DNA of 64,000 bases from Paragordius varius (GCA_964247055.1 OZ176051.1:12586001-12650000); one strand, 5' to 3'; shown: positions 9,425-40,775, numbered from the stretch's first letter. Translations and numbers: made by a program. Notes: generated by a model not told the origin, from the letters alone.

Positions 9425-10892
9425 ATCCACTGTGTGCAAAAAAGAGGGATTTTTTTACAAAAAATTTTTTTTATGAGATAGCATTTGACCAGAGAGTTTA
9501 TTTGCCGCAAAAATTTTAATTTGTTGACCCGTTTTTAAAATATTGAGAGAAAATCGAAATCGGGCAAAAAGTGAAAATTAAGGATCATTGAGGATAATTT
9601 AAAAAATAATGATAAAATTTGAGATATTATGGTTTATTATCATTTTAGGAGATATTTTATACAAAATATTTTAAAATCATATAGTTGATATTTCTATTTA
9701 ATCTCAGCTAAAAAGATGGCGTTTTTTATATGCATAAAAAATTTAAGATAATTTTAAATCAATACTCCGGTACCGATTCCAAAATTTCAGGAACCACCCC
9801 GGTTCTATCTATAAATTTTTAGGAACCAACCAGGTTCCGGTACCAACTCCTTAATTAGTGGTTCCCATATGATTTTTATTATAAAAATTTCCTTTTATTA
9901 TTTAAATTTGATTGTACCACTACATATTATATACTTCAAACTTAAAACCTAAAACTAAGCGCCTAATATTATATTAGCGATAATCTCTAAATTTGCATCT
10001 CTTCTAAAAAAACTAATAATCATAACTTAACTTTTATAATACATATGTTCGTAAATATAAGTCTCCGTTGAATGGATTTTTCAGCCTTTATTTATTTTCA
10101 TACCTGGGAAGCAGTTATACCAGCGAAATGCTTGGTGCAATAATTTTTTAAAGTTATATAAATTTTTTAAATTCCATACTTAATTTAACACTCATTATAA
10201 ACCTTTGTACCTATTCATTTTCGTATATTTTTATGAATTGTTTCATTTATGATACTACACTATAAATCTTCTTTGACATTCACTTAGCAATTTATAATAA
10301 ATTGTGTGATTTATAATTATTAATATTTTGGTTGTTGTAAGAAAATCATTTAATCAAAAGTCAGGAACCGAAAATGGAACCGGTTCTAAATGTAAAGAAC
10401 TGGTTCCGTTGGTTGATATTCCTTTAAATCCTGTTTTGCATAAATTATTTACTTTATGATTCCTACTCATGTAAAACTCCAAAATAAAACAGTATAAATT
10501 TTTTAAACACATATAAACCAGATGACACGGAATAAAATATGAATCTAATAGTGAGTTTAGCTAGTAAATTGAAAAAATTATTTTAATATAGTTTTCTTAA
10601 AAATTTTTGTCTTTTAAGTGTGTTAAAAGAAAAACGCCATCTTTTGAGCTGAGATTAGAAAAAACCAGATGTTCTAATCTATTTATATATTAAAATAAGG
10701 ATAATAAACCATAATATCTCAAATTTTATCATTATTTTTTGAAATATCCTTAATTTTCACTTTTCTCAGATTTTGATTTTCTCTCAATATAAACTAGGTC
10801 GTAAACAAATATTTTTACGGCAAATGAATACGCTGGTCATAAGCTATATCATGTTAAAAATTAATTTGTTAAATATTTTGTGCACACTGTGA
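9425..10892. repeat. Diverged ~300-bp inverted repeat pair (9425-9735 / 10630-10892), foldback or MITE-like
   Basis: For example AATGATAAAATTTGAGATATTATGGTTTATTATC (9608) versus its reverse complement at ~10700-10735, and ATCTCAGCTAAAAAGATGGCGTTTTT versus AAAAACGCCATCTTTTGAGCTGAGAT. Confidence 0.65.
9765..10420. mobile_element. Terminally eroded copy of the GGAACC-rich hAT MITE (see 34020-34767)
   Basis: Shares AATTTGATTGTACCACTACA, GCGCCTAATATTATATTAGCGATA and AATCAAAAGTCAGGAACCGAAAATGGAACC with the copies at 34020 and 53339. Confidence 0.7.
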
Positions 10893-11309
10893 ATATGTGC
10901 ATAGAGCTAGGCAGAAAAGGGTATAATGCACATCCCTTCACGCAAGAAAAGTATAATATACGACCCTAAAAATTCTTTGTAAATATCACTGGCAGAGACA
11001 TTGATAGTTTTGCAGTGTTTATAAAAAAAGTACTATCGATATAGGTGTCTAAGTTATATAAACTCGCTTGATATATACCAAAGACCCTTAATTTTTATGA
11101 ATTTGGTACATATTGGATGCGCACTGGGATCTACGTTGCAATTTACCCATAAAACATTAATATTTTTCTAAGATATTGATATAAATTTACATCTAAATTT
11201 TAGATACATACACAATTTTGAAATCTCCGTATAGTATAGTAAAAATTTATCTAAATATTTGGCTTTATTATAAATACGTGTGCAAATAAATACAAAGTGC
11301 AAATAAATT

Positions 11310-12368
11310 TTATGAAACAGATAGGACAAATAATCTATTATACAGCAATTGGTATGGTAATAACAATATTGATAATATGATATCCATCAAGTTTAATACG
11401 TAACATAAAATTGTTAAATAAAAATTATTAAATCTTTCCACCAAAATTATTATTGTATATATAAACATGTGAACAGCGGATAGAGTTAACAAAATCTTTA
11501 TTAAGTTGCAGGCTTGTAAGTATTTGTTTAGTTTCAAAAAGGTGTTAGATAAAATATTATTGGTATCAGTTATTGGAGCTACCGTGGCACTATTAAAAAG
11601 TGAAATGGCATTCCGTATTAATCCACCATTCATATTCTGAATGCGTCTCAAATGAATTTTTTTAACTGACAAAAACCATACAGCTCCGAAGAAGAATGAC
11701 ATGCTTTGCGTAAAACTTCCATATCTTATTAAATCAGTTATAGTAGTCATCCGATACGGTAATTTATATATAATAAACATTGGGATGACACCAAATGTAT
11801 GGTTATTTGAAAAACCTAAAAAGTAATACGTTTCGTTTTCAGTAAATGGTTGTATATAGTGATGTAAGATGGTCAAATCTCTATTGCCATAATCATGGTT
11901 ATCACTTATATTATGATGCGATTGAACAGCCCTATTTAACGTTACAAAATATCCAGACATTAGGATTACGTAATAGGATACAAAAATAGCATATTGAAAG
12001 CAAATGAACCCCATAAAACATTTATATAGCCGACGACCTATAAGCATACACCTCAGATAAATGTTAGATAAAATGGAATCCCTAATCACAATTCGAATTT
12101 GCAACAGTATTTCGGCCACGAAACGATTTAAATACCATGTATGAGGATAACACCCCAAATATAATGGATTTAATTGAATAAGAGCGTTTTGAATATTGGA
12201 TATAATTATTGCTACACTAATGGCGATATAGAATACAATCACAAATATTTGGCCGTTATTTTTGTTCAGGAGTTGTCGTTTAGCCATCTTCCAAGTTACA
12301 AGGGGTGTCACAACAGTCAAAATTGTTAGAAAACATATATCCAAAGACAGTAGCCATTTTATTAACAT
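11310..12368 (-). CDS. Orphan multipass membrane protein, 352 aa, single exon, 7TM/GPCR-like (gene A copy 1, intact)
   Basis: About seven hydrophobic stretches, a Cys ahead of TM3 (GCYP), TM3 ending IYLRC, a long loop with N-glycosylation sequons (NIS, NET, NHT) and a basic loop before TM6. Two paralogues in the window. The GPCR assignment is inferred from topology only. Confidence 0.72.
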   Translation of the reverse strand: MLIKWLLSLDICFLTILTVVTPLVTWKMAKRQLLNKNNGQIFVIVFYIAISVAIIISNIQNALIQLNPLYLGCYPHTWYLNRFVAEILLQIRIVIRDSILSNIYLRCMLIGRRLYKCFMGFICFQYAIFVSYYVILMSGYFVTLNRAVQSHHNISDNHDYGNRDLTILHHYIQPFTENETYYFLGFSNNHTFGVIPMFIIYKLPYRMTTITDLIRYGSFTQSMSFFFGAVWFLSVKKIHLRRIQNMNGGLIRNAISLFNSATVAPITDTNNILSNTFLKLNKYLQACNLIKILLTLSAVHMFIYTIIILVERFNNFYLTILCYVLNLMDIILSILLLPYQLLYNRLFVLSVS

Positions 12369-12897
12369 GAGACTCCAATTATTTTTTCAAAATTATATTT
12401 CTTTAAAAATGAACTAATTATATTGGGTAAGTGATAGAATTCAGAATGTTCATGACGCAGTTAATCGTTTTAGCCTATTAATATATCGAATCAACAAGCA
12501 TCATAAGTCTTATTTCATCATTAATAAATTACACAATATTATATCAAAAATGGGAAATATGGCTACATATTTTCCCCTAATTTTTCTGAAGGAACTTTTT
12601 TAGCACAATTTTCAATGTTATTGTTATATCGTAGTTTCATTTTTATTTTTTAGATTATTAATAAGCAACGAAATATTTGTTGTAAGTTTAGCCAACGTTG
12701 GTTTTAAATTTAAGATGGTTTTTTATTAATGAATTAGATTGGTTCATAAAGAAAAGTATTATTATCAAAATAATTTATTATTAATCAAATATTTATTAAA
12801 TCGTTGCATATATCAAATTGCCTGGTAAAATTATTATCATGCGTTTATTATCAATGTTAAAATGTCATGATTAGACGTAATACAGTCGTGAACTTAG

Positions 12898-12898
<1 letters not shown>

Positions 12899-12934
<36 letters not shown>
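12899..12934. repeat. (TA)n microsatellite
   Basis: Direct. Paralogous tract at ~40708-40744. Other (TA)n tracts at ~13925-13958, ~27516-27542 and ~49628-49672. Confidence 0.95.
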
Positions 12935-12936
<2 letters not shown>

Positions 12937-13923
12937 GATGACTATCCGGATCATGGTTCATGGGTTTATTTACAAATAATTTAAAAAGATTTTACCGATT
13001 TGTGGATATTGTTTAAAATCAAAATTCACATGGGCGCAAAAAAATGTGTTTGACTCAAACCGGAACAGATTTTTGTGAAAAGACCACTCAATATTTTAAA
13101 TTTATTGAGAAACGAATCATTTAATCAAAAATTATAGGTGATAGAAAAAATCTGATGAAAAATATATATAATATAAAGCAGTGGTACTCACCAAAAAAAT
13201 TTGACGGGTCAAATAAAATATATTTTTTTTTCGAGGGCCATGAACCTTATAATGGCAAATAATCTATAGTTATTTGACACATATGCACTTATTTATACTC
13301 TAAATTAGCACAATGGTTTTTGCGGATAGCATGTAAATCCAGCTAAAAACTCGTTTTGCACCATTTAGTTTAAAAAATTAAAATATTTCGATAACAACAG
13401 TTATTTGGACATTAACCAATAATTTTTGACAAATTTGGTTTCGCCTCATGACAGGCCAATACAAAGTCGTCCATATGATCATCGGTTAAGCGATTTCTGT
13501 ATGTATTCTTTACATACTTCATTTTTGAATATGCCCTCTCACACGTGTAAGTTGAGGGAAAAACAGTTTGGATAACTTGAGCACATTTTTATATTTTCAT
13601 ATTTATTTAATACATCTTGCCAAAACTCCTTCCCTACGATTTTCCTTGAAAGCCCCAAATTAAAATCATTTAATATACGAATTCTTCAATGAAATGCGCC
13701 TGATCATGCTCAAGTTGCTTAATATTGGATATATCCATATGCCATGTATTTTCAACTAGTTTTAAGCAATTTTTAATATTTCTTTTGAAATCTGAAATTC
13801 ATTTCATTAAATAAAAATGTTAAATGATTGTCTATTATTAAATTAACCGCGGTAAATTCCATATTTTCACGATGAATCGTTTTAAGTGTTGGAAAATATA
13901 GGAGTGTTTTATTTTTAAAATCT

Positions 13924-13962
<39 letters not shown>

Positions 13963-15544
13963 TTTTCTTCATAAGCAAATATATTAGCAAATTGGGTTAT
14001 TATTTTGGTCCCTTGAACTTGTATTAAAAATACTAAGTTTATGAGTAATGACGCAAAGGTCTAATAAAACCGTCCATTTATCCCTATTAATTTCATCGTT
14101 AAACCTTCTGCTATCTTTTAAAAATAATAGAATTTCATGTCTTAAAACAGAAAATCTTTTTAATACTTTGCTAAGGCTTAGCCATCTCACAGCGGTGTAC
14201 AGAAGAATATCATCTAACTCACTGTGGATATATTTCAAAAGGTTTTTGAAACAGCGGTTGAATTCTTTGCAACGGATGTGGTTAACATACACACAACCGT
14301 TTTAATAACTGAATGAAGTGATTTATCTTTTAAACAACGCAGTGAAGGGATAAAATATTTTGCAAATTATTTGTTTTTCAAAAGAGGAATAAATCCTTTT
14401 ATTCCAATCGTTGAGGGACAGCTATTTGTGCAGATCGAAACCAATTTTTTCATAGATGTACCATTATTATCGAAAAAAGTGCTAATTATTTCGTGAAAAC
14501 TTCCTTTCGTGGTATTATTCATTGGTAAATATTTTAAATATTCCTCGTTGATTATGTTGTCGTTACAAAATCGTACGAATAGCTCACATTGAGGTGTTGA
14601 ACTAATATCAGTGCTAGAATCAAGAGCAATGCTAAAATATTGCAGTTCAGAGCCAATAATATATTGTTAAAAATATATTTAGACATATCTTCAATGCGTC
14701 GATTGAATCAGAAAGTAATTAATTTGCCTCATGATTTGATCTTTATTATGTAATTTATCAAATAAAAAAGTGCAACCATTTATTAGACATTCTTTTGTTA
14801 GTTGGAAATGGTTATATATTTTTTCCTAAATAGCAAATTTCATACGAAGCTAATGTTAAAGCTTTTTCCTGGGAAAAAGCCATGAACATAATAGATTTTT
14901 CTTTCTGGTATAATTCTTTAATCTTTTTGTATTTTTTGGTTTTCAGCAATCTGTTAATCTATGAGAAATTTGGATTTTAAAATGACTTTCAATATTGTAT
15001 TTTTTTATAATTATGTTGTCCTTACATATAAGGCAGGTAATAACCTTATAATTTTAACAGTTTTCTTTTTATTATGTATTAAAAACACGCGCGCGCGTTC
15101 GACCCATCTGACGCAACTTCAAAAACGAAAAATTCTTAATAAATTTTATATTATGTCTATTGTTATCTATTTATCTTCAAAGTTTATTCTATCTTTTATC
15201 ACTTATCCTATACTTTAAATTTTGTTATAACATACCTATTCCCATTTTTGTTTTTGGACGTAGGACTTACCGTTGGCCTTTTCCTATAATTTGCCTATTA
15301 ATATTCTCCTAAAATATATAGATTGTATTCTTGGATAAGTATTGTAGCACTATTTTATTTAATTTTTTACTATGACACATAAAATAACCCTTGATTTATA
15401 TTGTTTTATACATAAATTTTGCTTTAAATTTATTGCGAAATATAATTTCCGTTTTTACCTATAGCCTAGGTTTTTTTTAACATCTATCAATTTTCATAAT
15501 TGACACTTCAATTTTATTTTTATTTGTTTGTTTAAAGCTGTCAA

Positions 15545-17422
15545 ATGAATATTGATGTGTATAGTAATAACCGGTCAGGCCTGGCCAGCCGCGGTTTTGG
15601 TGTTGTGGCCAATAATTCAAAGAGAATGCAAAGAAAAAAGAGATGCCTGTGTTTTGCTAGTTTAAATGTTGGTTCATTGAAAAGTAAGTTAAATGATATT
15701 GAGAGAATAATGAAAGTTAAACATATTGATATTTTGGCATTACAAGAGACTTGTTACCGCGGAAACGGAGCAAGGACTTTGGAAGAGAATAATTATCGAC
15801 TATATTACTCAGGTGAAAGTGGCGGACGAAATGGAGTGGCAGTTATCATTAATCCCAAATTGTCTAATCAGGTTAAAGAGGTTAGACGCTATAACAGCCG
15901 AATCATGAATTTAGATATTTTGGTAGGTAACGAGGTCATAACGGTATTTAGCATATATGCCCCGCAAATAGGTTTACCCAAACAAGAAAAGGAGCAATTT
16001 TACGAGACTTTAGATGAAAAAATAGTCGCTCTCCCTCAGCTCAGAGTCAAGTTTTTATGTGGGGATTTTAATGGTCATCTTGGTTCAAAAAGGGAATCTT
16101 TTGAAATATGGCACGGGGGACATTCTTATGGAGAAAGAAACGAGGAAGGAATTAATTTGCTCAGATTCACAATCTCAAAATTTGACGATAGCGAACACGT
16201 TTTTCGAAAAAAGAGAGAGTCATTTAGTAACTTACAAAAGTGTCATAAACAAATCACAAATAGATTTTATACTAGTCCCAAGAGACTTATTGAAGCTTGT
16301 AATAGACTGTGAGGTCGTGCCAAACTTAGAGGTTAGTTCGCAACATAATTTACTTATTTGTAAATTTTTCGTGAAAGAAAAGTCTAAACAAAGTGGTTCT
16401 TATTCAAAGAGATTAAAAAGTATAAAGTGGGAGAAATTATCCGAAAAAAGGCAGGCTTTTATAAAAGAAATACGGTTATCCGAGGATGGTGGGTTGAATG
16501 GTGATTGGGATAAAGTAAGTCAGTTAATCAAAAAGGCAGGAACTCTAGTTTGTGGATTAAAAGGCGGAAAGTCTCAAGTATACAGAGAGGCTTGGCTTTA
16601 CGATGAAAGAATAATATTGATGTCACGAGAAAAAGGTAAGGCTTTTGACAAATGGAGACATACAAGGAATGATGATGATAGAGATAAGTATAAAAGTTTA
16701 AACAAGGAATTGAAAAATTAGTCGGCCATGTTAAGAAAGAAAAGATGAATTTATTTTATGATGAGTTAAATAGTAAGCAGGGTTTAAACAAAGTGTATAA
16801 AGTTGCGCAGCAAAGGAATAAACGCAGGATGGATTTGCCAGGTTATGTGACTGCAATAAAAGGAAAAGATGGAAGCTTGTTGTGCGAAAATGTAGAAATA
16901 TTGAAAGATGGAAAGAGTAATTTGTGAGTTTAGATGAAGGGGTAGGCGAGATATTTTTGCCAAATACAGTTGAAGCTACTGATAGACCAATAGAAGCAAT
17001 TACACAAAAGGAAGTAGAATCCAATTTGTTAGAAATGCCAAACAACAAAGCTGTAGGATCGGACGACATAAATATAAATTGTTGGAAAGTGCTTGGAAAC
17101 TCTGGTTTAAATTTTTTCGAGCGTGTATTTAATAAAGTTGTTTCAACGTATGAAATCCCGGTTGAATGGAAGGAAAGTTTAACTGTGACTTTTTTTAAAG
17201 GAAAAGGTGATATAAATGACTGTAGTAACTATAGAGGGATAAAACTTATGTCGCACACTATGAAATTGTTTGAAAAAATAATTGAAAAGCGAATCAGGAA
17301 TATGATATCTATAGAAGGAAATCAATTTGGTTTCATGCCAGGAAAGTCAACAGTATATACACATTGAAAAAAAGAAAGAATTACACGGGGTTTTAATTGA
17401 TATAGAGAAGGCGTTTGACAGG
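15545..17422 (+). pseudogene. RTE ORF, 5' part: APE endonuclease and RT N-terminus, frameshifted
   Basis: SLNVGSL, LALQET, GVAV, IYAPQ and GDFNGH (APE motifs); KGKGD..DCSNYRGIKLMSHTMKLFEKII and QFGFMPGKST (RT). Split across track ORFs 15545, 16059, 16745 and 16924. Confidence 0.92.
17418..17422. repeat. 5-bp target-site duplication ACAGG, left copy (right copy 21261-21265)
   Basis: The uninterrupted paralogous LINE reads GCGTTTAACAGGATTCC at 8231-8247 with a single ACAGG. Confidence 0.96.
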
Positions 17423-17725
17423 TGACAAATAGTTAATATAAATTATAAAGGATATATTTATTTATTTAGTATAACATCAAAATCGAATAATATAATATAA
17501 TGTGTTCTGTGTGTTACAATGATTCCTTATATACATTAGGAAATTTGGTTATTGCATTGGATAAAGTTGTGTGGTTTAAACGTTGTTAAAGATAATAAGT
17601 ATAAATAAAATAATTTGCATTCACAACCAAGGTAATATATATATTTTAAGCGTAACAAGGACCAAAGTATATTATGCACTAAAAAAGAGAAGGATAATTT
17701 GCGTATGATGATAACCCTATTAACA
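17423..17725 (-). repeat. 3' LTR (303 bp)
   Basis: Identical by eye to 20953-21260 except that it lacks 5 bp (CACAA on + strand). AATAAA on the minus strand at 17457-17466. Confidence 0.96.
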
Positions 17726-17727
17726 TA

Positions 17728-17738
17728 CCTTCTTCCTT
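17728..17738 (-). promoter_or_regulatory. Polypurine tract AAGGAAGAAGG
   Basis: Lies between the pol stop codon and the TG of the 3' LTR, 2 nt from the LTR. Confidence 0.85.
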
Positions 17739-20160
17739 AAGCTTGATATCGGTCGGGTGGCTTTCGGGATCTAATCGGGTACCGGCGAGTTGTGGTAGGA
17801 GAAGTGTCACTTGTTTGCACGGGAGTATTCTCACTTGAAGGCGCACTTTCTGATTCCGGATTCTCCTCGATGTTTTCAGGGGTTCTTATTTCATGTTCCG
17901 TGGGATGTTTTCGGAGGTTATTATCATTGTTGTTTAAGTTGTTGGTTAAGTTTTTAGTCTTTTCCTCACTGTTATTATTATTGTTGTTTAAGTTGTTGTT
18001 TAAGTTTTTAGTCTTTTCCTCACTTCTCCCGTCTTCTCCTTCGGCCGACCAATCCATGCGATTCCTTAATTGATCAGCATGTTTGCGGATAATTTTGCCA
18101 TTGTCGTTGACATTGTACGATAACCATCCCGTTCTGTCGACGATTTGTCCCTCCCTCCAACCAGAACACAACTCATTCTTGATATATACTTTTTGCCCCT
18201 TTTCAAACTCCTGCGGAATGTCGGGAGTATCCATGAATTCGTTGGGTTTCGTTTTCATCCATGTTAATGGGCTTTGCATAGTTCTTTTTAAAAACAAATG
18301 CGCGGGGGTCTCCTTCGTAGAACTGTGATGCGTGTTTCGGTAAGCCCATAAGATTTGGTTTAATCTTCGTACTGGGTCTGCGGAAAGGTCTGCGGAAAGT
18401 GGGGTTGACATTGAATAATGATTTTTTAGAGTGTAAATTACCCTCTCTACCAACCCATTTGTTCGGGGGTGGTAGGGAGCTGATGTTACGTGTTTTATAT
18501 TAGAGGAAGCTAAAGTTCTCTCAAACTCCCCCGATTTAAAATAAGAGCCGTTATCAGTAACCACCACTTTTGGGTACCCATACCGGCAAAAACAGGTTTC
18601 TAAAAACTTAAGGATATTACCGGTATTCACAGAACGTAACGTTTCTACCTCCACCCAGCGGGTGCAATGATCAATTAGTACCACCCAGTATAAATTGTCA
18701 ATGGGTCCAGCGATATCTAGGTGGAGCCGTTCCCATATGGTTGTATTCTCGTTCCATTGATAGGTGGGATTTTCGGGTACATTTGGGCGCAGCCTTTGAC
18801 AGTTTTGGCAACTACGCACCCATTTATCGATATCTTGGCTCAACCCGGGCCAATAAACCTTTTCACGGCTTAATAGTTTCATGGCTTGTATTCCCGGATG
18901 GCCACTATGCAGGTATCTTAAAATATCTGGCTTAATTTTGTTCGGGATTATTACCCGATCTCCCACAAATAATAGACCGTATGCATCCTCAATTTCATTT
19001 TTTATTGCTATGAAAGGCTTGACCAGGGGGTCCGTCCAATTATTAGACCTTAGGGCTACTTTTAACTTTGCTATAGTAGGATCCTTCATAGACTCTTGAT
19101 AGATAATTTCTCTATTTAAATTTAATTCGTTGGACCAAATCAAATGAACATTGCTACTTTCATCATCTTTCTCAAACGCCATCGGCTCCTGGTTTTCAAT
19201 GGGGAGTCTCGATAGGCAGTCAGCTATGTTTTCTGTACCAGGGTGATATTCTATGTTAAAATCGAATACCGATGTTCTAGTTATCCAGCGTACTAGTTTA
19301 CAATTATTAATTTTACTTATATCTCTTTGAGGCCCAAATAGTTTCACTAAAGGTTTGTGGTCCGTTTGTATTATAAATTTCCTGCCATACAAAAAGGTTT
19401 TAAACTTCTCTAACGCTATTAGGATAGATTTTGCTTCTCGCTCAATTACTGAATAGTTTCCTTCAGCCTGAGAGCATTTTTTTGACGTGTAGGCGATCGG
19501 GCGATTACCCGCTGTTGTTCTATGTGATAAAATAGCACCGTATCCCGACATTGACGCGTCGGTTTCCAAGACTATAGGTAGTTTGGGATTATACGGATGC
19601 AAGGAACTACTCTGGCAGATCAAGTCTTTAGCTTTTTTGAATATCGAATCATGCGTTAGAGACCAACACCATTTTTGTTTGTTGCCTGCTAATTTATGTA
19701 GTTCTCCCATTAAAATGCTTAGGGAAGGGATGAATTTTGCATGAAAATTAAGTAAACCCAAAAATGATCTAAGAGTGGTTTTGTTGGTCGGGGTCGGGCA
19801 CTCTCGGATGGCTTTAATTTTGTTTGGGGAGGGCTTAATGCAATTTTCAGAAATAATGTGACCAAGATATTCTACAGATGGTTGAAAAAGTTTTATTTTA
19901 TCTTTGCGCAATTTTAATCCCATTGTCTCCAATTTGGTAAATACCTTTATTAGGTTGTCCTTATGCTTTGTCTCGGTTTCTCCTGTCACGATAACGTCAT
20001 CTAAATAAACGGCTGTACCTGCGCAATCTTTTAATAACTCGTCCATTATTTGTTGAAAGAAACTTGGGGCGCAATTCAACCCGAAAGGCAATCGTTTATA
20101 CTTATAAAACCCCTTATGTGTCGAAATTGTTAGTAAGTGCTGACTATCTGGGTCTACCAG
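17737..20160 (-). CDS. pol: Gypsy pol lacking its N-terminus: RT C-half, RNase H, integrase
   Basis: No stops from the junction (~20160; LVDPDSQHLLTISTHKGFYKYKRLPFG) to 17737. YLDD present. RNase H motifs LETDAS, EREA, TDHKPL, ADCLSR. HHCC zinc finger; RLHLD / TDNG / NGLVER with D-35-E spacing. The track start at 20091 is TTG; the first ATG is at 20046. The upstream RT motif with the first catalytic Asp is absent. Confidence 0.94.
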   Translation of the reverse strand: MVDPDSQHLLTISTHKGFYKYKRLPFGLNCAPSFFQQIMDELLKDCAGTAVYLDDVIVTGETETKHKDNLIKVFTKLETMGLKLRKDKIKLFQPSVEYLGHIISENCIKPSPNKIKAIRECPTPTNKTTLRSFLGLLNFHAKFIPSLSILMGELHKLAGNKQKWCWSLTHDSIFKKAKDLICQSSSLHPYNPKLPIVLETDASMSGYGAILSHRTTAGNRPIAYTSKKCSQAEGNYSVIEREAKSILIALEKFKTFLYGRKFIIQTDHKPLVKLFGPQRDISKINNCKLVRWITRTSVFDFNIEYHPGTENIADCLSRLPIENQEPMAFEKDDESSNVHLIWSNELNLNREIIYQESMKDPTIAKLKVALRSNNWTDPLVKPFIAIKNEIEDAYGLLFVGDRVIIPNKIKPDILRYLHSGHPGIQAMKLLSREKVYWPGLSQDIDKWVRSCQNCQRLRPNVPENPTYQWNENTTIWERLHLDIAGPIDNLYWVVLIDHCTRWVEVETLRSVNTGNILKFLETCFCRYGYPKVVVTDNGSYFKSGEFERTLASSNIKHVTSAPYHPRTNGLVERVIYTLKNHYSMSTPLSADLSADPVRRLNQILWAYRNTHHSSTKETPAHLFLKRTMQSPLTWMKTKPNEFMDTPDIPQEFEKGQKVYIKNELCSGWREGQIVDRTGWLSYNVNDNGKIIRKHADQLRNRMDWSAEGEDGRSEEKTKNLNNNLNNNNNNSEEKTKNLTNNLNNNDNNLRKHPTEHEIRTPENIEENPESESAPSSENTPVQTSDTSPTTTRRYPIRSRKPPDRYQA
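17917..18024. repeat. 54-bp tandem duplication (18 aa, Asn-rich) in the integrase tail
   Basis: SEEKTKNLNNNLNNNNNN / SEEKTKNLTNNLNNNDNN; two nucleotide mismatches. Confidence 0.9.
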
Positions 20161-20942
20161 GGTATGATAGTTTTTTCCCTTTGTTTCACATCACTGGCAT
20201 AACAAATCTTAGGTGCTTCCAAAACACGGCCTTGTAATTCAATCAATTTATCATCGACACTAATGCCAAAAGCTTTCATCACTGGGTCTTGATTAAATTT
20301 TGCATCATGAATCTTTCCCATAATTGAGCGTTCACGTTCAGGAGCCGGTATAGCAGTGTGCCGTATCATATTGGCAACCATGGTATCTGTCACTCGATTT
20401 TTCTTTTGTCCGGCTTTAAGTTCACAAACCTCAAAAGGCAAATAAACTTGTTTTTGTAGACTACCGACTCTCAGACAAGGCAAATTGGGATATTGTAAGC
20501 TTTTATTGTATTGCAACTTGAAATATTCGGCAACAGATACCTTCGTTTCTTTTCCATCGCGAGACATGGTAAACATTTGTTGAGCCGCTGATAAATTTGA
20601 TATTTCTCGTATAACATAAGTCCTTTGAATATGACCTTGATGTGTAACTCTAACTTTAAGGTTTTTCAATTCTTTCTGCAACATAGATTTTTGATGCGGA
20701 CTCAAACTATTGATTTGACGTAGATTCAAAAATTCTTGAGCAAAATTAACGATTGAAATTTGTTTGTAGAAAGCGGTGGCAGCCAAATCAATGTTTAAAG
20801 TCATTTTCCATTGGGTTGGTCTAGCGCTCTGAAAACGACCCATCCATAATTCACATCCTTCAAACAGATTTGGCGGATTGGTTGGATAAGGATATAGCGA
20901 ACGACCAACAGGGACATATCTTAGAGAAGGTGTGTGCTTCAT
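20154..20942 (-). CDS. AGO: Argonaute (AGO-clade) fragment, 262 aa: L1/DUF1785, PAZ and L2 linker; no MID or PIWI domain
   Basis: Colinear with animal AGO proteins as recalled: MKHTPSLRYVPVGRS (cf. human AGO2 MRHLPSMRYTPVGRS), WKMTLNIDLAATAFYK (WKMMLNIDVSATAFYK), VAEYFK..Y...LQYPNLPCLRVG...YLPFEVC (PAZ), MIRHTA..APER, FNQDP..KAFGI, GRVLEAPKI. Intronless, no stops. Confidence 0.95.
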   Translation of the reverse strand: MKHTPSLRYVPVGRSLYPYPTNPPNLFEGCELWMGRFQSARPTQWKMTLNIDLAATAFYKQISIVNFAQEFLNLRQINSLSPHQKSMLQKELKNLKVRVTHQGHIQRTYVIREISNLSAAQQMFTMSRDGKETKVSVAEYFKLQYNKSLQYPNLPCLRVGSLQKQVYLPFEVCELKAGQKKNRVTDTMVANMIRHTAIPAPERERSIMGKIHDAKFNQDPVMKAFGISVDDKLIELQGRVLEAPKICYASDVKQREKTIIPW

Positions 20943-20950
20943 CCGCGCCA
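20940..20950 (-). promoter_or_regulatory. Primer-binding site TGGCGCGGATG, overlapping the Argonaute ATG
   Basis: Starts 2 nt inside the 5' LTR end with TGG, complementary to tRNA CCA. The priming tRNA was not identified. Confidence 0.75.
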
Positions 20951-20952
20951 GT

Positions 20953-21260
20953 TGACAAATAGTTAATATAAATTATAAAGGATATATTTATTTATTTAGT
21001 ATAACATCAAAATCGAATAATATAATATAATGTGTTCTGTGTGTTACAATGATTCCTTATATACATTAGGAAATTTGGTTATTGCATTCACAAGGATAAA
21101 GTTGTGTGGTTTAAACGTTGTTAAAGATAATAAGTATAAATAAAATAATTTGCATTCACAACCAAGGTAATATATATATTTTAAGCGTAACAAGGACCAA
21201 AGTATATTATGCACTAAAAAAGAGAAGGATAATTTGCGTATGATGATAACCCTATTAACA
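20953..21260 (-). repeat. 5' LTR (308 bp)
   Basis: TGTTAAT...TTTGTCA on the minus strand. TATATAA at 21063-21057; AATAAA at 20987-20996. Confidence 0.96.
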
Positions 21261-21265
21261 ACAGG

Positions 21266-22278
21266 ATTCCTAGAAAAACTATTTGGTGGAGTCTCCGTCG
21301 TAAAAAGGTGCCAGAAAGTTATATTAAGTTATTACAAATAATGTACGAATCACACACCTCCAGGATTAAAACTCCATAAGGTTTATCAGAGCCCTTTTCA
21401 ATAAAGCATGGAGTCTACCAAGGCTCATCACTCAGCCCCTTATTGTTTATAATTTGTATGGACGAGGTAGCCAAGGTTGTTAATGTGAGTTCAGGATGGT
21501 ACTTAATGTATGCAGATGACATAATCATCTTGTCTGATTCATTAATTGAGTTGAAGCGAACGGTAAACAGATGGGTTGTTATGCTGGATCAACATGGTCT
21601 GAAAGTAAACAAAGCAAAAACCGAACTTATTACTTTTGGGGGTCCACAACATGAAATGGTAGTTGATGATAGTTGGGTTCTGAAGGGTAAAGAAAGTTGC
21701 AAATATCTGGGAGCTATGTTAAGTGCAGATGGTTCGTTGACTGATGATATTAATTTAAGAATAAAGAGCAGCTGGGTAAATTGGAAGAAAATTTCGAGCG
21801 TATTATGCGATCGAAATATTGATGTTAGAGTGAAAGGTAAGATTTACAGTTCAGTTGTCCATCCCTCAATGATGTATAATTCACAGACGTGGGGTGTCAA
21901 AAAATCCGAAGAAAGACATTTTAACGTGACTGAAATGAAAATGCTCAGAATGATGTGTGGGTAACAAGAAAGGACAGAATCGAGAATAGATTTATTCGTG
22001 GGAGCACAGATATTAAATCAATAGTGGAAAGAATGTCAAAAAATAGGCTACGTTGGTTCGGGCACATTGAAAGGAGAGATTCTAATTATATTGCAAAAAT
22101 AATAGATGGTTATATAGTTGAGGGAAAACGAGGACGTGGGCGGCCTAAAACGAAATGGATAGATACAGTAAAAAGAGAGCTAGCAAAATACGAGCTTAAT
22201 GCAGAGGACGCCATAGATAGAGTTTTATGCCGAGACAGGTTGTATAACATGACCGCTCTCACGACTGAAAACATGTAA
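21266..22278 (+). pseudogene. RTE ORF, 3' part: RT core and C-terminus
   Basis: GVYQGSSLSP, YLMYADD, KYLG and RLRWFGHIERR...GKRGRGRPKTKWID. Frameshift near 21960. Confidence 0.92.
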
Positions 22279-22889
22279 TGTAATAATAATAATAAATAAC
22301 CTTATAATTTAAACCAAGAAAGAATTTTTCTTGCCATTCTTTTTTATTAGCATTAGATGTCATCATTTGAATTTATGTTTCAATATTAAGTAAATTTTTC
22401 CAAAAAATAGGAATATAATTTGAATAACGCTATAAAAAACAGTTAATTATGTTGATAAAAATATTTTATGGGAATGAGTTATAAAAAATAATGCAGGATA
22501 GCAATGAAAAGAATATATATATACTTAAATACAAAAAAAGAATGCAATAAAAATTTCAAAATAGAAAAGAAAATAGAATGCAAAAACAGAAACAACGTGC
22601 GCCAAAATTTTGAAATCATTTTAATGTATGGAAATTTTCTACATTTCGAATGGAGTAAAAAATAACAATTACTAAAATTAAATGTAAAGAAAATAAAATA
22701 TTAAAATAAGCGAAAATTCGTTTAAGTGTATTTTAAAAAAATTCATCAATAAAAAAATTTAAGTATCAATGTGGTCAAAGGGCAATTTTAAAGCGCTCTT
22801 AGGGCCGCGGTTTGAGTACCACTGATAAACTGTTTATACCGTTTGAAGCTTCAAAATACCATCTACATAGGATATAAAATCGCGGGTTA

Positions 22890-23995
22890 TATAAAATATT
22901 CCTGATGATATAAAAATTATAGAAAGATGTATTCGGATTATTATAGTGCTTTTGGTTTTGCCCCTTCCGAGGGATGTAAGAAAGTTATTTATATGGACGC
23001 TCCATATCAAGAAAATTACAAAATTAGCGCACATTTTATTTTTTTAGTGAAAGCTAATGCTAATTTCAAAAGATCTCGCTAAATCATAATCTACATATTA
23101 ACAAAACAATAATTTTAAAAAATACAATGTTGGAATGCTAAGTCCCAAATGTTACGCTCTAAAATGGTCTAATTCTCTTAAAACGCTAAAATGCCCCGAA
23201 TGAGAGATAAAAATTTAAGTCAAGCTAAATTTTGTTATCAATTAAAAATTTATACAAATACCTACTTTTTTTAAAAATTTAATTATAATTTGGTTAAAAT
23301 ATTTTGATATTATTTTAAGGAAACGTTTCAAAATTAAAAAATGCTTAAGATGCTATAAAACACTTCTTATTTATAATTCGATGAAGTTGAACAATCGCTT
23401 CAGAATTTAATTTAAATCATTTCTTTCAAATTTTAGCATGTAAAAAACACATTTTATATTATACATTTGGAGACGACTAGATATAATTAATTAAAATGAG
23501 TTGATATGAATGTTCATTGAATTATGCGGAAAAAGTTTTTTTTTTCATATCTTAGAACGTATTTTTGTTACGCCAAAATAGTATACCGCTACCAAAATTT
23601 TGTCATTAATTTAATTTTAAATATTTTTTTCTGGCAAATTATTTATTATTGTCAAAGTTTAGCCTATATTTATAATTATTATTGCTCAATCTCTGTCTTT
23701 TTGTTTTTATTTTAAAAAAAATACCCATTTTATAACGGTGAAAAAATTAGGGATTTTGGAGTCCATAAAATTTAAATTTTAAAAACTATTTTGCTTTATA
23801 TATGTAATTTTGATTTTCAGTGATATTTTTTGGAATTAAGGATTTAGCTTTTACTATATTTAACAATGTGCGCAAACTTCGCCATATTTTGGAAGGGGCA
23901 CTTACCCCAAAAGTTAAATACTTTCACTTATAAAGGTAAAAATCAAAATAATTATGATACATTATCTTATATATTTTTCATCAGGATATTTTTTG
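22890..23995. repeat. Diverged inverted repeat pair (~22890-23150 / ~23760-23995) of the foldback-like family; paralogue ~44140-45150
   Basis: ATATTCCTGATG...GCGCACATT...AAAGCTAA on + strand is mirrored by TTAGCTTTT...AATGTGCGC...CATCAGGATAT. Confidence 0.6.
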
Positions 23996-25012
23996 TTTAC
24001 AATGGGTATAGTTCATTTCACCAAAGTTTTGCTATAAATAAAATTTTTATGCGAAATTTTTACTTTTTCGGAAAATATTTATCGCACAATATCGATTTAG
24101 CGTTTATATAGTTTTTTAAGTGAAACAGATTAGTTAGCTTTCACCAATTTTTTTTAAAATACATTTTGATATATAGCAATTACCACAAAAAATAATAATT
24201 TTCGCACCACCAAAATGATATTATCTACAGAGCCATATATTTTATCAGGATAACTTTGTTTGTGCGCTCTGCATGCACAAAATGGTATTCATTAATATTT
24301 TCTTAAAATGGAGTTATTCAATCATAAAAAATATTTTATGTTGTTTTATACTGTAAAAAAAAGTTAACATTTTACACAATCGGATCGAATTTTAAACAAT
24401 ATGAGGAGGTACTTATCAGGATATAAATATAAATAATCTTTAAAATACTAATTGTTTAATATCGTTTTAATGATGTGTTTAAATAGTGAAAAATTAACTT
24501 ATTTAAAATATAAATGACCAAAACTATGTTTTTTTAAAAAAACATTATGTAAATCTTATTATAATCTAGGCTCGTTTAAACCATTTAACCAAGTACAAAA
24601 ATGTAAGATTTTAATTTACTTAACATATTTAAAAAGTCTCTGTCACAAAATATCAATCCAATTATAATTAATATATCATTTTCACTTCTAAAGTCTTTAA
24701 ACATTTATAATTGTCTTTGCGCATTTTAGACTGTCCGTTACACTTTAAGTTGGTTTTAAGCAGTTGAATTGGTGCTTAAACATTTAGACATTTTAAGATA
24801 CTGATTTTATTTTTATTTAATTTCAATATATTAATTCAAATTTTTGAATCATTTTTTTTCATTTATTAAATTAAAAACTAAAAAATATAAATAAAAAATA
24901 TTAATAAATAAAGATATCAGGTTAAAAACTTGTAAGATGGGGCTACATGTAAAAGGAAATATTTATTGTGTATATAATAAACAAGGTTGGTAATATATAA
25001 ATATATATATAC

Positions 25013-25243
25013 CATTTCCCAGTCTAAATAAACGTTTTCCCAGTCAATCGAAACATTTTCCCAGTCTATCGAAACGTTTTCCCAGTCAATCGAAACATTT
25101 TCCCAGTCAATCGAAACGTTTTCCCAGTCAATCGAAACATTTTCCCAGTCAATAAAAACGTTTTCCCAGTCAATCGAAACGTTTTCTCAGTCAATCGAAA
25201 CGTTTTCCCAGTCAATAAAAACGTTTTCCCAGTCAATAAAAAC
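25013..25243 (+). repeat. 11 x 21-bp tandem array in the left TIR
   Basis: Unit TTTTCCCAGTCAAT(CG/AA)AAAC(A/G), head-to-tail with no spacers. Confidence 0.93.
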
Positions 25244-25958
25244 GGTTTTATTTTTGATAATAAATATCAAAACAAGATACAAAAATAACTTTTAACCATT
25301 ATCAGCGTAATATTAGGATATTATTTTGCAAAAAAACACAATTTTCCCCTTATATTTCACTACACAATCTTTGAACTTATCTTTGAAAGCTATATTTTAT
25401 TAGCTGGATGAGTATGGTTTTTGAGATTTTTTGAAGAAAATTAATAATTTATTTTTATCAATCGTTCGCATTTATATTCGGGGCTAACCTAAAATATCTA
25501 AAATTTCGAATTGAATTATAAAATTTAAATGTATTAACTCTTTACAATCAAAAGGAAACCTTTCAACTTTGTCCTTGATCAAAATACTGTTTTAAAGAAT
25601 AATTATACGATGAAAAAGTTGATTTTAATAAAAAAATATATTGGATAAAATACAAATACATAATATTATGGTACGCAAGTTTATGTTAATTTGAGATGTT
25701 TAAGTATGAAATTTTAATGTTTAAGGGCTAACCTGAAATGCAAATGGTATATAATTTGATTACTTATATACAATGCAGCGATTAAGTTTTAGATACGAGT
25801 TGTTAATTTTTCTGTGACTATCTGGTGTGCAATATTGTAATTATATACCATTATTTTCTCGTCTGCTTTTAATTTATTGGATAAAAACCTTACGTTGATT
25901 ATTTTGCCTACATCAAATTATCTATATAAGGTTCATTTTATTTAGTAATATTTTAGTA

Positions 25959-26983
25959 ATGTCAGTAACAGAAATCAAGAAAAAATTAGTTATATCTTAA
26001 CAAGAAAAGCGATTAGTAAAACGAGTTTTTTTGATGGAGAATGGACTGTGGATGTATCAAAGGATTTAGATATAAACTATAATACTGCTCGTCAAATTAT
26101 GTATAAATATAAAAAAACAATAGTTCAGAAATTCTAACTCGTGGAGGCACTAAAAATAAAAAAATTACGGAAGATATTATGCATTTCATAGATAATAAAC
26201 TAACTTATCAGCGGTCATTAACAATTAACCAGTTAAAAAATTTTTTGGAAGATGAACAAAAAATAAAATTATATAAATCCTCTATAGACCCAGTAATCAA
26301 ATCCTTAAAAATAACTTTGAAGTTAGCCCATCATCTTGAAAAAGTCAATGATCCTCAAATAATAGATTTAAGGAAAAAATACGCAATATGGTTTTCACAA
26401 TCTTTCTCCGATGACTTAACAAATATTATTTATTTGGATGAATGCGGTTATAATAACCATATTAGAAGAAGCCAAGGTCGACTCCAAAAGTGGCACGAGA
26501 GCCAATATTGTGGTGCCTAGCGTAAAAGGCAGAAACATCACTTTTATTAAAGCTCTGTCATTAAGAGGTATGGTTTATTACGAAATAGAAAGCCAAAGAA
26601 CAGTCAATTCCCAACGCTTTACAAGTTTTTTTGATGGACTTTGTGAATATTTAAAGCGGGACGATATTTAATATCATTTTATTATGGACAATGCACGGAT
26701 TCATAAAAAAAATGAATTAAAAGGTAGAGCCTATTTATACAAATACAAAATTGATTTTTTGTCCCCGTACATTAATATGTTAAATCCAATCGAAATGGCA
26801 TTTTCAAAAATGAAAAATTTTGTCCGACAAAATATTATATTAAATAATATGAATGCGAATGTGGAATTAGTGAATCTGATAAAATTGGCAGCGGGCTCCA
26901 TAACATCGGAGGGTAGCAGAAATTATTTTGAAAATATAATGACAAATATGGTAAAGGCGGCAGCCGGTTTACCTTATATGTGA
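25959..26983 (+). pseudogene. DD34E transposase, frameshifted
   Basis: IIYLDECGYN ... MDNARIHK-(34 residues from D)-NPIE...FSKMK. HTH-like piece near 26050-26110. Split across several frames. Confidence 0.9.
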
Positions 26984-27264
26984 TCTTTTTATAACATATA
27001 CAATAAATGAAAATCATTTTTTAATATATTATCTCAATTTGTCTCTTTAATAAAATCAAACAATGATTGATTTATTCAGGTGTATGTACAGTAATAATTC
27101 AACTTTTTAAAAATAAGTCATTAAAAAATGTGTAGTGGAAATATGGGAAAAATTGTCATTCAATAATTGTGTTTTCTTGCAAAATAATATCCTAATATTA
27201 CGCTGATAATGGTTAAAAGTTATTTTTGTATCTTGTTTTGATATTTATTATCAAAAATAAAACC

Positions 27265-27495
27265 GTTTTTATTGACTGGGAAAACGTTTTTATTGACTGG
27301 GAAAACGTTTCGAATGACTGAGAAAACGTTTCGATTGACTGGGAAAACGTTTTTATTGACTGGGAAAATGTTTCGATTGACTGGGAAAACGTTTCGATTG
27401 ACTGGGAAAATGTTTCGATTGACTGGGAAAACGTTTTGATTGACTGGGAAAATGTTTCGATTGACTGGGAAAACGTTTATTTAGACTGGGAAATG
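27265..27495 (-). repeat. 11 x 21-bp tandem array in the right TIR
   Basis: Mirror image of the left array, including the single CTCAG variant in unit 9. Confidence 0.93.
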
Positions 27496-27624
27496 GTATA
27501 TCACATCGGGCTGGTATAATATATATATATATATATATATATGCGCCTAACTTAATGTGTATAAATGTATTCGAATTCATAGGGGGTAAAATGCCTGCAA
27601 TACGGTTTTTTCAATAATATAATC

Positions 27625-30319: not shown

Positions 30320-30699
30320 ATATAATCTATATATTTATAAAAATAGAAAATACTGACTTTATGATCTGTTTCCGGAAAACTGGTAGACCCATTCAAATCC
30401 AAATCTCGAAAAAATATAGTCATTAATGAATGCCCTGACAATAGCTTCGCCTATTTTTGAATTAGGTCGCTAGTTCGGCCCCACCCCGTGTAAAAAACGG
30501 TTTTTTTTGAAAACAGAAGTCCACAAAAATTGGGTCTGTGAGACAATTTTGTGGAAAAAGTGTTGGACCACTCGATTTTAAATATGATTTTTTTACTTAT
30601 TTTCGATTGCGCCGAACATAGTCGGCTCACCTTTTAATTTAGGCCCTCTTTTTACCCGCTCTCCCAGTAAAATGTAATTTTTTTAAAAAAAGTCCACAA

Positions 30700-32050: not shown

Positions 32051-32439
32051 AAAAATATATTAGTATGAATGCACAGTTTTGAAAATTCTTGAAACACCGT
32101 TTTGAAAATCCTATGAGATGATAACTATTAAATAATGTTTCGAAATAATTCATTGTTGAGCCCTTTCTTCAAATAGCGACTTCGCAGGCTCCAATCCAAT
32201 TGTTTGTAAGCCATAGTATCTACTCCATAAGGACAAACTCATTACAGTGATCAACTGCATCACAGGTTATGCATTTATGTTTTATAGAAATTTTACAAAT
32301 GTGTGTAAGTCAAACCTCTTTACTCCATAAGTACAAAATTATACATGTCTTTTTTTATTATTTACATACCAGATGTCAAAAATAAAGCTTTTTTTGCACG
32401 GTGTACCCAATAATTGACTCTCAAACCCGATCAACAATA

Positions 32440-33990: not shown

Positions 33991-34019
33991 ATCCTTTTTG
34001 GTGACTTGATACATAATCG

Positions 34020-40709: not shown

Positions 40710-40747
<38 letters not shown>

Positions 40748-40775
40748 GATGACTACCCGGATCATGGTTCATGGG

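Follow-up and report, generated by a model that had tools for sequence, protein, structure and literature searches.

The analysed window is a 64,000-nt stretch of Paragordius varius DNA, which at positions 17423-21260 carries an LTR retrotransposon on the minus strand. Both LTRs, the 5' LTR of 308 nt (20953-21260, minus strand) and the 3' LTR of 303 nt (17423-17725, minus strand), have TG..CA termini and show no substitutions, a single 5-bp indel being their sole difference. The 5' LTR contains the TATA-like TATATAAGG at about 21063 and AATAAA at about 20996, as well as one upstream ORF of three codons with its ATG at 21007. The PBS-like TGGCGCGG (20943-20950, minus strand), situated 2 nt past the 5' LTR in the 5' junction region, and the polypurine tract AAGGAAGAAGG (17728-17738, minus strand), situated 2 nt upstream of the 3' LTR and overlapping the pol stop codon, were both read from the sequence. 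The recognisable part of the PBS comprises 8-11 nt only and abuts directly on the ATG of the ORF described below; a search for its primer revealed no tRNA gene within the 64-kb window. The element is flanked by the target-site duplication ACAGG, whose left copy (17418-17422) and right copy (21261-21265) match perfectly over 5 bp, a length within the 4-6 bp characteristic of Ty3/gypsy elements. Near-identical LTRs, a polypurine tract and a perfect target-site duplication had been claimed in a sequence-only reading of this DNA, and all of them were reproduced.

The element interrupts a LINE located on the plus strand. The left part of the LINE (15545-17422), comprising the APE endonuclease and the N-terminal half of the RT (Pfam Exo_endo_phos and RVT_1), is 87% identical to positions 6656-8242 of the same window, and the right part (21266-22292), comprising the C-terminal half of the RT (RVT_1) and the tail, is 92% identical to positions 8237-9259. 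Removal of the element together with one ACAGG restores the RT motif of the LINE, DIEKAFDR being joined to IPRKTIWW, while the LINE paralogue at 6656-9259 is uninterrupted and contains ACAGG once, at about 8237-8242. The segment 17423-21260 is thereby confirmed as a bona fide insertion. No further copy of its LTR or pol is present in the window, so that it is the single copy of this element within 64 kb. The window itself is extremely repeat-rich.

The first part of the element past the PBS is occupied by a stop-free ORF of 262 codons (20154-20942, minus strand, 789 bp), ending with a TAG stop at the junction with pol. In a Pfam search the three profiles expected from the sequence-only reading were all matched above their cut-offs on the minus strand: ArgoL1 (about 20763-20912, 53.2 bits), PAZ (about 20391-20696, 90.3 bits, E 1e-25), and ArgoL2 (about 20199-20339, 55.2 bits). 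The ORF is colinear with residues 165-420 of human AGO1 (E 2e-60, in matches to AGO1 and AGO2 of the PDB), and its initiating ATG is a conserved internal Met of Argonautes (M165 in human AGO1, M192 in Gordionus). The context of this start codon is weak, with C at -3 and A at +4, and the three-codon upstream ORF precedes it. The breakpoints lie inside L1 and inside L2, off the domain borders; the 3' junction, leading from Argonaute ...TIIP to RT (L)VDPDSQ..., is placed within 20157-20166 (minus strand). The AF2 model of the 262-aa ORF predicts an L1-PAZ-L2 fold (pLDDT 85.6, rising to 93-98 across PAZ; TM 0.79 versus human AGO1), with the PAZ part deviating from stand-alone hAGO2 PAZ by an rmsd of 1.3 A. 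Neither the ORF nor any other part of the window contains an N, MID (5'-phosphate pocket), or PIWI (RNase H-like slicer) domain, which makes the product a fragment that cannot be a working RISC, in agreement with the earlier claim.

Seven of the eight positions of the PAZ pocket are retained, H101, Y109, F124, Y140, Y145, Y167, and L168 of the ORF corresponding to H269, Y277, F292, Y309, Y314, Y336, and L337 of hAGO1, the last of which we take to be a pocket residue. At the remaining position K313 of hAGO1 is replaced by Q144, and in Gordionus it is likewise not K. The roles of H269, Y277, F292, Y309, K313, Y314, and Y336 in 3'-end binding by hAGO1 PAZ have been described (PMC5896489). Judged by these residues, the predicted 3'-end-binding pocket of the encoded PAZ is intact.

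The nearest relatives of the ORF are two Argonautes of another horsehair worm, Gordionus (Nematomorpha), with 62-63% identity, while identity to sequences from outside Gordionus does not exceed 47%. In the tree the three form a clade with 100/100 support, which together with the Pfam matches and the colinearity with human AGO1 bears out the assignment to AGO-clade L1-PAZ-L2. This AGO clade is lineage-specific and fast-evolving (with a long stem of 0.75 and an identity below 50% in comparisons with canonical AGOs), and one of its Gordionus members has a long repeat-rich N-terminal extension. At the nucleotide level the Gordionus genes and the ORF are 63% identical, with saturated synonymous sites. 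Each of the two Gordionus genes has nine introns in the homologous stretch versus none in the ORF, which was correctly recognised as intronless; the cargo thus comes from a spliced mRNA. It is internal to the coding sequence, devoid of poly(A), and has the same sense as the element. The ORF is thereby shown to be a cDNA fragment of an AGO-clade host Argonaute.

The Argonaute ORF is followed by a truncated pol frame (17737-20190, minus strand), open throughout, which does not begin with an ATG and is shifted to frame -1 with respect to the ORF of the Argonaute fragment. It encodes the C-terminal half of the RT (from about 20165) with the YLDD box, RNase H (about 19279-19665, Pfam RT_RNaseH(_2)), the integrase zinc finger (about 18784-18948, Integrase_H2C2), and the integrase core (about 18466-18699, rve), all on the minus strand; the order RT - RNase H - integrase is that of Ty3/gypsy (Metaviridae-type) elements, and the RNase H and the H2C2 integrase are likewise of gypsy type. 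The best relatives of pol are proteins annotated as 'K02A2.6-like' or 'Gypsy retrotransposon integrase', at 35-38% identity. Its C-terminal tail is N-rich and contains a 54-bp tandem duplication (17917-18024, minus strand; two copies, 96% identical). The alignment to full-length gypsy gag-pol polyproteins begins at VDPDSQ, i.e., at residue ca. 523-550 of 1304-1328 aa, and the RVT_1 match covers profile positions 119-205 only, which agrees with the mid-RT breakpoint proposed before. Neither an ORF nor a domain of gag or protease was found in the element by ORF scanning and Pfam. The claimed replacement of gag and protease is therefore upheld, and the loss extends further, to the leader and the N-terminal half of the RT including the region of the motif-A aspartate; gag, protease, and this half of the RT amount to ca. 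520-550 residues. Without gag, protease, and the N-terminal half of the RT the element cannot move autonomously; it is a non-autonomous Ty3/gypsy derivative. Its remobilisation would be possible solely via helper packaging, which is doubtful since the entire leader and gag region is gone.

The insertion is very recent and its cargo undecayed. The branch of the ORF (0.33) is not accelerated in comparison with those of the Gordionus genes (0.31-0.34), and its departures from residues conserved among Argonautes (at 3 of 27, 5 of 46, and 6 of 68 columns) are within the range of real Argonautes, as its Pfam scores are close to those of the Gordionus proteins. Given no substitutions in 303 nt of LTR, a copy evolving neutrally would have kept its frame free of stops with a probability of at least 0.82, and the open frame is consequently uninformative on selection. 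Youth by itself would account for the intact ORF, the undamaged PAZ pocket, and the lack of acceleration on the branch. GC3 is 0.29 in the cargo versus 0.41 in pol of the element, a weak hint at a short residence of the cargo in it.

Taken together, the structure is real and unusual, and it probably represents a single, very recently integrated, non-autonomous copy of Ty3/gypsy type, made by retrovirus-style transduction and most likely a neutral by-product of it. Intron-free host sequence in the sense orientation replaces coding sequence between intact cis elements, as in retroviral-type transduction, and an internal coding fragment, in sense and lacking poly(A), has the geometry expected of template switching at the RNA level, a process described for LTR elements in reviews (PMC13317346). 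Inside a virus-like particle, the RT engaged in synthesis of the minus-strand cDNA would have departed from the element RNA midway through the RT gene, copied ca. 0.79 kb of a co-packaged spliced AGO-clade mRNA from L2 back via PAZ to L1, and rejoined the element RNA at the PBS. The chimeric cDNA would then have gained normal LTRs, and integrase supplied in trans would have inserted it into the LINE with a 5-bp duplication. The first ORF of the resulting element transcript would encode the 262-aa L1-PAZ-L2 polypeptide. The sense orientation is what template switching yields anyway and is no argument for function, and breakpoints within L1 and L2 are more in keeping with an accident than with a tidy module. 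The neutral one-off capture, kept as a fallback in the sequence-only reading, is currently the best explanation. Several points nevertheless speak against it: the captured gene codes for an RNAi effector rather than being a random one, silencing genes have been captured repeatedly by telomeric elements of Drosophila, apparently under selection (PMC13534243), and the start of the ORF coincides precisely with the junction, at a conserved Met that occupies the place of gag translation. Moreover, seven of the eight PAZ pocket residues are retained, and 'one-off' is an assumption based on one copy in the window; protein and contig collections yielded no related element with this cargo, but other ORFs of the window are absent from them too, so that the source genome lies outside their coverage.

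The alternatives concern either the function of the cargo or the way it was acquired. A counter-defence role, as a decoy, a dominant-negative Ago, or a source of anti-Ago small RNAs, had been proposed as a candidate function. It is unlikely that small RNAs raised against the element and covering the 0.79 kb of Argonaute sequence would hit the host Argonaute mRNA in trans, as in the case of TART-A; the pathway silencing the element would thereby be weakened, and even a single copy could do so as a side effect. The precedent consists of at least nine independent captures by Drosophila telomeric retrotransposons, eight of which involved genes of the piRNA pathway (nxf2, piwi, aubergine) (PMC13534243), where piRNAs map to the host gene and the families with captures are higher in copy number (PMC13534243; PMC7785250). 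The origin of the cargo from a fast-evolving, lineage-specific AGO clade, one member of which has the repeat-rich extension in Gordionus, is also in line with such targeting. However, what the Drosophila elements captured are short pieces (140-235 bp) outside their ORFs, as opposed to the long in-frame ORF found here, targeting requires nucleotide identity to the host gene of roughly 85-90% or more (PMC13534243), nematomorphs are reported to be devoid of RdRPs (PMC13650160), which would leave no secondary amplification, and the element is known from one copy. An action at the protein level, in which the 262-aa product translated from the gag position would sequester siRNA or piRNA duplexes by their 3' ends, or act as a competitor of the full-length Argonaute, either in loading or for partner proteins, is very unlikely. 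It would be favoured by the position of the ORF as the first long one past the PBS, behind an LTR with TATA-like and AATAAA signals, by the confidently predicted fold of PAZ, by the seven pocket residues kept, and by the fact that the ORF spans the whole region solved as isolated PAZ with or without RNA (1R4K, 1SI2/1SI3, 6RA4, 8THQ). All these features, however, would equally be seen in a functional host gene that had just been copied. PAZ domains in isolation bind 3' ends only weakly, and L1 and L2 normally pack on N, MID, and PIWI, whose absence renders solubility and stability uncertain. The breakpoints off the domain borders, the weak start context, the preceding upstream ORF, and one copy in 64 kb, with no sign of a family, argue in the same direction.

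As regards acquisition, an Argonaute retrocopy or its fragment might have been brought into the element after its integration, through illegitimate recombination, gene conversion, or repair, with loss of the part from gag to the middle of the RT and without any template switch in reverse transcription. An internal replacement devoid of its own target duplication also fits double-strand-break repair with a cDNA filler. This route is nevertheless quite unlikely, as LTRs with no substitutions mean that hardly any time has passed since integration in which a second, complex event could have occurred, and the sense cargo, lacking poly(A) and LINE-type hallmarks, exactly fills the span from PBS to RT. 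It is barely credible that the assembler created either or both of the internal junctions by chimeric joining, although a window so rich in repeats could favour this: an intron-free Argonaute fragment in genomic DNA requires a retro-event in any case, the outer ends on both sides are borne out by the duplicated target and by the LINE paralogue with the empty site, and the window contains no second copy of LTR or pol that could be mis-joined.

The element thus regarded as a probable transduction product resembles several known systems. In the literature searched no gypsy family with Argonaute cargo was found, and the novelty claimed by the sequence-only reading holds in this respect; it does not extend to retrotransposons in general, since capture of piwi and aubergine is documented in Drosophila telomeric non-LTR elements (PMC13534243). 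Capture of Argonaute-family fragments by retrotransposons is thus already known, and the gypsy LTR element with an AGO-clade ORF is what differs here. TART-A and other elements of the HeT-A/TART/TAHRE clade similarly carry pieces of host small-RNA-silencing genes, some of the Argonaute family, and an anti-silencing role is the obvious hypothesis for both. Nevertheless, those elements are non-LTR, of the Jockey clade, with PIWI-clade or nxf2 cargo, and not Ty3/gypsy LTR elements of a nematomorph with AGO-clade cargo. Their captured fragments are 76-95% identical to the host gene, often amplified, and form multi-copy families with piRNA data in support (PMC13534243), whereas the 789-bp cargo found here is a complete ORF replacing gag, protease, and the N-terminal part of RT in one copy.

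Maize Bs1 and other plant LTR elements have likewise lost coding capacity and carry spliced host fragments in sense that make up a new ORF, and the accepted route of such capture is a switch of template among co-packaged RNAs (PMC13317346). Bs1, however, is an established, expressed low-copy family whose cargo (H+-ATPase, xylan endohydrolase, as well as beta-1,3-glucanase) is unlinked to silencing, whereas a single copy with a silencing gene is known here, in an animal host. The same replacement of coding sequence by cDNA, and the same defectiveness, characterise the acutely transforming retroviruses, in which viral coding sequence has given way, between LTRs that remain intact, to host cDNA free of introns and which are defective and helper-dependent. 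Classical v-onc capture starts with read-through out of a provirus located upstream of the host gene, with cell transformation providing the selection, but nothing here points to a read-through route or to selection. The concept of a transposon-encoded protein countering host silencing is embodied by VANC of VANDAL, Mutator-like DNA transposons of Arabidopsis, an experimentally proven anti-silencing protein acting sequence-specifically on DNA methylation; it differs in belonging to a DNA transposon and in not being derived from a silencing gene.

The element, a minus-strand gypsy-type LTR retrotransposon inserted in a LINE, occupies positions 17423–21260 of the window. It is bordered by a 5' LTR of 308 nt (20953–21260) and a 3' LTR of 303 nt (17423–17725), both on the minus strand, starting with TG and ending with CA, and is flanked on both sides by the target duplication ACAGG (17418–17422 and 21261–21265). 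The LTRs differ by a single 5-bp indel and no substitution, and carry a TATA-like box and AATAAA. A PBS-like sequence, TGGCGCGG, and a polypurine tract, AAGGAAGAAGG, are each set off by 2 nt from the neighbouring LTR, the former from the 5' and the latter from the 3' LTR; past ca. 11 nt the sequence following TGG is unlike a tRNA 3' end, and the window contains no tRNA gene. The anatomy described in the sequence-only reading, i.e., near-identical LTRs, a polypurine tract and a perfect target duplication, was thus reproduced in full. Removal in silico of the element together with one ACAGG rejoins the LINE RT frame at the conserved DIEKAFDR/IPRKTIWW, and a second copy of the host LINE (6656–9259, 87–92% identical) runs uninterrupted across the insertion site with a single ACAGG, so the outer boundaries of the element are proven twice over. 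The LINE family (APE and RT) has two copies in the window, 6656–9259 and 15838–17422 with 21260–22292, stops being present in both; the former represents the empty site of the LTR insertion. Elsewhere in the 64-kb window neither the LTR nor the internal region is repeated.

The cargo, an ORF of 262 codons (20154–20942, minus strand), occupies the span from the PBS to the middle of the RT. Its identification as a module colinear with the L1–PAZ–L2 part of AGO-clade Argonautes is borne out by three Pfam families, all scoring over their cut-offs (PAZ 90.3 bits, ArgoL1 53.2, and ArgoL2 55.2), and by an end-to-end alignment with residues 165–420 of human AGO1 (E 2e-60). The ATG of the cargo corresponds to a conserved internal methionine of Argonautes. 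The AlphaFold2 model, built with 34 homologues, has a mean pLDDT of 85.6 (93–98 in PAZ) and compares with human AGO1 at a TM of 0.79, its predicted PAZ part matching the stand-alone hAGO2 PAZ–RNA structure at 1.3 Å. The N, MID, and PIWI domains are found neither in the cargo nor elsewhere in the window, in agreement with the originally claimed absence of the last two.

The pol remnant 3' of the cargo is an open frame of ca. 817 codons in the −1 frame, comprising the C-terminal part of RT with the YLDD box, RNase H, the integrase zinc finger and core, and an N-rich tail, in which no chromodomain is found. It is 35–38% identical to gypsy-type gag-pol polyproteins ('K02A2.6-like', 1304–1328 aa), and its alignment with these full-length relatives begins at VDPDSQ, their residue 523–550, indicating that some 520–550 residues have been replaced by the 262-codon cargo. 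Gag and the protease are gone, as is the N-terminal half of RT with the region of the first catalytic aspartate. Autonomous replication of this copy is therefore impossible; the entire leader is missing as well as gag, and with them probably the packaging signals, for which this is the usual place. The 5' junction of the chimera is located between the PBS and the start codon of the cargo, and at the 3' junction (ca. 20157–20166) the Argonaute-like ...TIIP abuts (L)VDPDSQ. The end of the cargo overlaps pol by 34 nt (20157–20190, minus strand), with the frames at −1 and an A6 run, GGGAAAAAAC. A gag-pol-like −1 frameshift from the cargo into the truncated pol was considered and rejected, there being no in-frame X XXY YYZ heptamer, and since this canonical slippery sequence is absent, the gag-pol-like arrangement is probably a coincidence. 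The N-rich tail of pol also contains a 54-bp tandem duplication (17917–18024, minus strand, 96% identical), due to which the peptide SEEKTKNL(N/T)NNLNNN... occurs twice.

Among 1.84 billion representative proteins searched, the best match of the cargo is 64% identical and all the others at most 47%. The former, together with its full-length form, represents 'argonaute-2-like' proteins of the horsehair worm Gordionus sp. m RMFG-2023, and a paralogue encoded on the same chromosome of this worm is equally close (62% identity to the cargo). A maximum-likelihood tree unites the cargo with both Gordionus proteins in a single clade (support 100/100) on a long stem (0.75), which places the donor, the host gene that supplied the cargo, in a divergent, lineage-specific AGO group outside the slowly evolving miRNA Argonautes. 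Over the stretch homologous to the cargo each Gordionus gene is interrupted by nine introns, one of them 15.7 kb long, and their absence from the cargo shows that its template was a spliced mRNA; the initial claim that an intronless sequence had been captured is thereby upheld. Synonymous sites are saturated between the cargo and the Gordionus genes (pS 0.79–0.83), and hence no dN/dS ratio is given. No donor Argonaute gene is present in the window, and 81 kb of Gordionus DNA compared with the repeat-dense window has no other similarity to it at the DNA or protein level and no common repeat. The window is therefore unlikely to come from Gordionus itself, in which case the capture would be ancient; its source is most probably a different nematomorph. 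The Gordionus paralogues, designated P0281 (OX940784.2, positions 10001–26675 of stretch L002) and P0151 (stretch L001), lie ca. 6.5 Mb apart, with identical intron positions across the L1–PAZ–L2 stretch. P0281 has an N-terminal extension of ca. 330 residues with K/G/D-rich repeats and recurring QKKWPKS motifs, which we take to be reminiscent of the repeat-rich insect Ago2 N-termini.

As judged from its sequence, the captured module is undamaged, and none of five tests speaks for its maintenance. In the tree the cargo has a branch of 0.33, not longer than the paths leading to the two Gordionus genes (0.31–0.34), and its Pfam scores are about equal to those of the Gordionus proteins. Where at least 90, 80, and 70% of 33 other Argonautes agree, it departs from them at 3 of 27, 5 of 46, and 6 of 68 columns, respectively, which is within the range of genuine Argonautes. 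The PAZ pocket positions H269, Y277, F292, Y309, Y314, Y336, and L337 (human AGO1 numbering) are all kept, L337 presumably being, like the others, a residue that holds the small-RNA 3' end; the K313 position is occupied by Q in the cargo and is not K in Gordionus either. For the first six of these positions such a role has been described in the PAZ domain of human AGO1 (PMC5896489). GC3 is lower in the cargo (0.29) than in the element's pol (0.41). Zero substitutions in 303 nt of LTR set a 95% upper bound of 0.5% on the per-copy divergence, at which a neutral frame of 262 codons would still be stop-free with a probability of 0.82. The sense orientation is forced by capture at the RNA level, and a long ORF is to be expected from any sense capture of coding sequence, as in-frame methionines are found also at codons 34 and 47.

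The simplest account of the chimera, one requiring no function of the cargo, is that during reverse transcription of the element RNA two template switches with a co-packaged Argonaute mRNA would have led to transduction. Such an event would yield an intron-free, internal, poly(A)-less, sense cargo filling exactly the space from the PBS to mid-RT, as well as perfect LTRs and normal integration. Maize Bs1 and the retroviruses that carry oncogenes are long-known examples of the same route. For LTR elements it has been reviewed (PMC13317346). Taken as one claim, a transduction by template switching that was recent and probably neutral is the reading we hold to be rather probable. A rearrangement at the DNA level, by which the Argonaute sequence would have entered an element already integrated, is improbable; an assembly error, which would make the chimera an artefact, is scarcely credible, and the restored LINE frame and the uninterrupted LINE copy attest at least the outer ends of the insertion.

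The counter-defence role proposed in the sequence-only reading (a small-RNA decoy, a dominant-negative Argonaute, or a source of anti-Argonaute small RNAs) is an attractive hypothesis. A TART-like effect of small RNAs on the host Argonaute is unlikely, if somewhat less so than the rearrangement; it has its precedent in TART-A of Drosophila melanogaster, which contains a fragment of nxf2 (PMC7785250). Action of the product itself as a protein decoy or dominant-negative is more doubtful still. Scarcely more probable is an amplifying, helper-mobilised family of gag-less gypsy elements in horsehair worms, with the cargo expressed and selected as an anti-RNAi factor; if true, the cargo would act by binding small-RNA 3' ends as a protein decoy or by giving rise to small RNAs directed against a fast-evolving host Argonaute, and the Drosophila telomeric-element captures would have in this element their first counterpart among LTR retrotransposons and the first of the AGO clade. 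No second captured copy was found among homologues of 144–458 aa (best match 43% identity), no PAZ or Argo domain among the 120 listed matches of pol (best 37–38% identity), only full-length Argonautes 40–43% identical and one partial match of 78 residues (50%) among metagenome contigs, and nothing in a viral contig scan and a phage-database blast; these results carry no weight, because the source genome is outside the collections searched, where exact look-ups of the 262-aa product and of two other window ORFs in the assembly collection gave no record.

The finding is best classed as a host-gene transduction by a retroelement, a known phenomenon, here with a silencing gene as the cargo. The literature search revealed no gypsy or other LTR element with an Argonaute cargo, so the suggested novelty may hold for the element, but not for the theme of silencing-gene capture, already known from Drosophila. 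According to a 2026 survey, telomeric non-LTR elements have captured host-gene fragments independently at least nine times, in seven cases from piwi or aubergine, the captured piwi/aubergine fragments being 140–235 bp long and 76–95% identical to the host gene, with piRNA evidence of host-gene targeting and higher copy numbers of the capturing families (PMC13534243). The element differs from these in its class (LTR/gypsy), phylum, Argonaute clade (AGO, not PIWI), and cargo size, and mainly in that the cargo, occupying the place of gag, is a complete ORF; the Drosophila cases are convincing by family, donor, and small RNAs, whereas the element is known from the sequence of one copy. Nematomorph genomes are reported to be rich in transposable elements, with recent bursts (bioRxiv 10.1101/2024.06.11.598342), and to lack RdRPs, PIWI being present at least in Nectonema (PMC13650160). 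The theft by transposons of parts of their own silencing machinery is a newly recognised theme, so far based on fly telomeric non-LTR elements and short non-coding fragments, and the element would extend it to an LTR type in a distant, barely studied phylum, with a long translatable Argonaute module where gag would be. If it belonged to a family, the strategy would prove general and a directly testable protein-level variant would be added; as a one-off, it would be a clean, datable case of retrovirus-like transduction in an invertebrate, marking the gypsy lineage as active now. For now the finding is of moderate interest, which the discovery of a family or of small-RNA targeting would raise to high.

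The window has 24–40% G+C and consists nearly entirely of interspersed repeats; an Rfam scan of it gave no family, and it shows no clear protein-coding gene of the host. Its left edge (2–436, plus strand) is taken up by the C-terminal integrase portion of a different gypsy-type element, with 50% protein identity to residues 532–678 of the element's pol, which denotes a related but distinct family and, by DNA identity, no helper candidate. A block of ca. 10 kb occurs twice in the same orientation (30320–40664 and 49745–59938, 81–94% identical in pieces) and holds degraded gypsy-like pol remnants at ca. 33.0–35.3 and 52.3–54.4 kb; the pair represents either a segmental duplication or a large composite repeat present in two copies. 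A 1.8-kb repeat in three copies, 93–94% identical (11149–12965, 38945–40776, and 58221–59938), represents an unclassified, possibly coding family, its long ORFs (352, 313, and 268 aa) having no Pfam match. A pair of 337-bp inverted repeats (25007–25343 and 27165–27501, 98.8% identical, with ca. 108-bp sub-repeats), enclosing ca. 1.8 kb, resembles a foldback or long-TIR DNA transposon, and just downstream of it a 440-aa ORF (28467–29789) shows a weak match to the hAT dimerisation domain.
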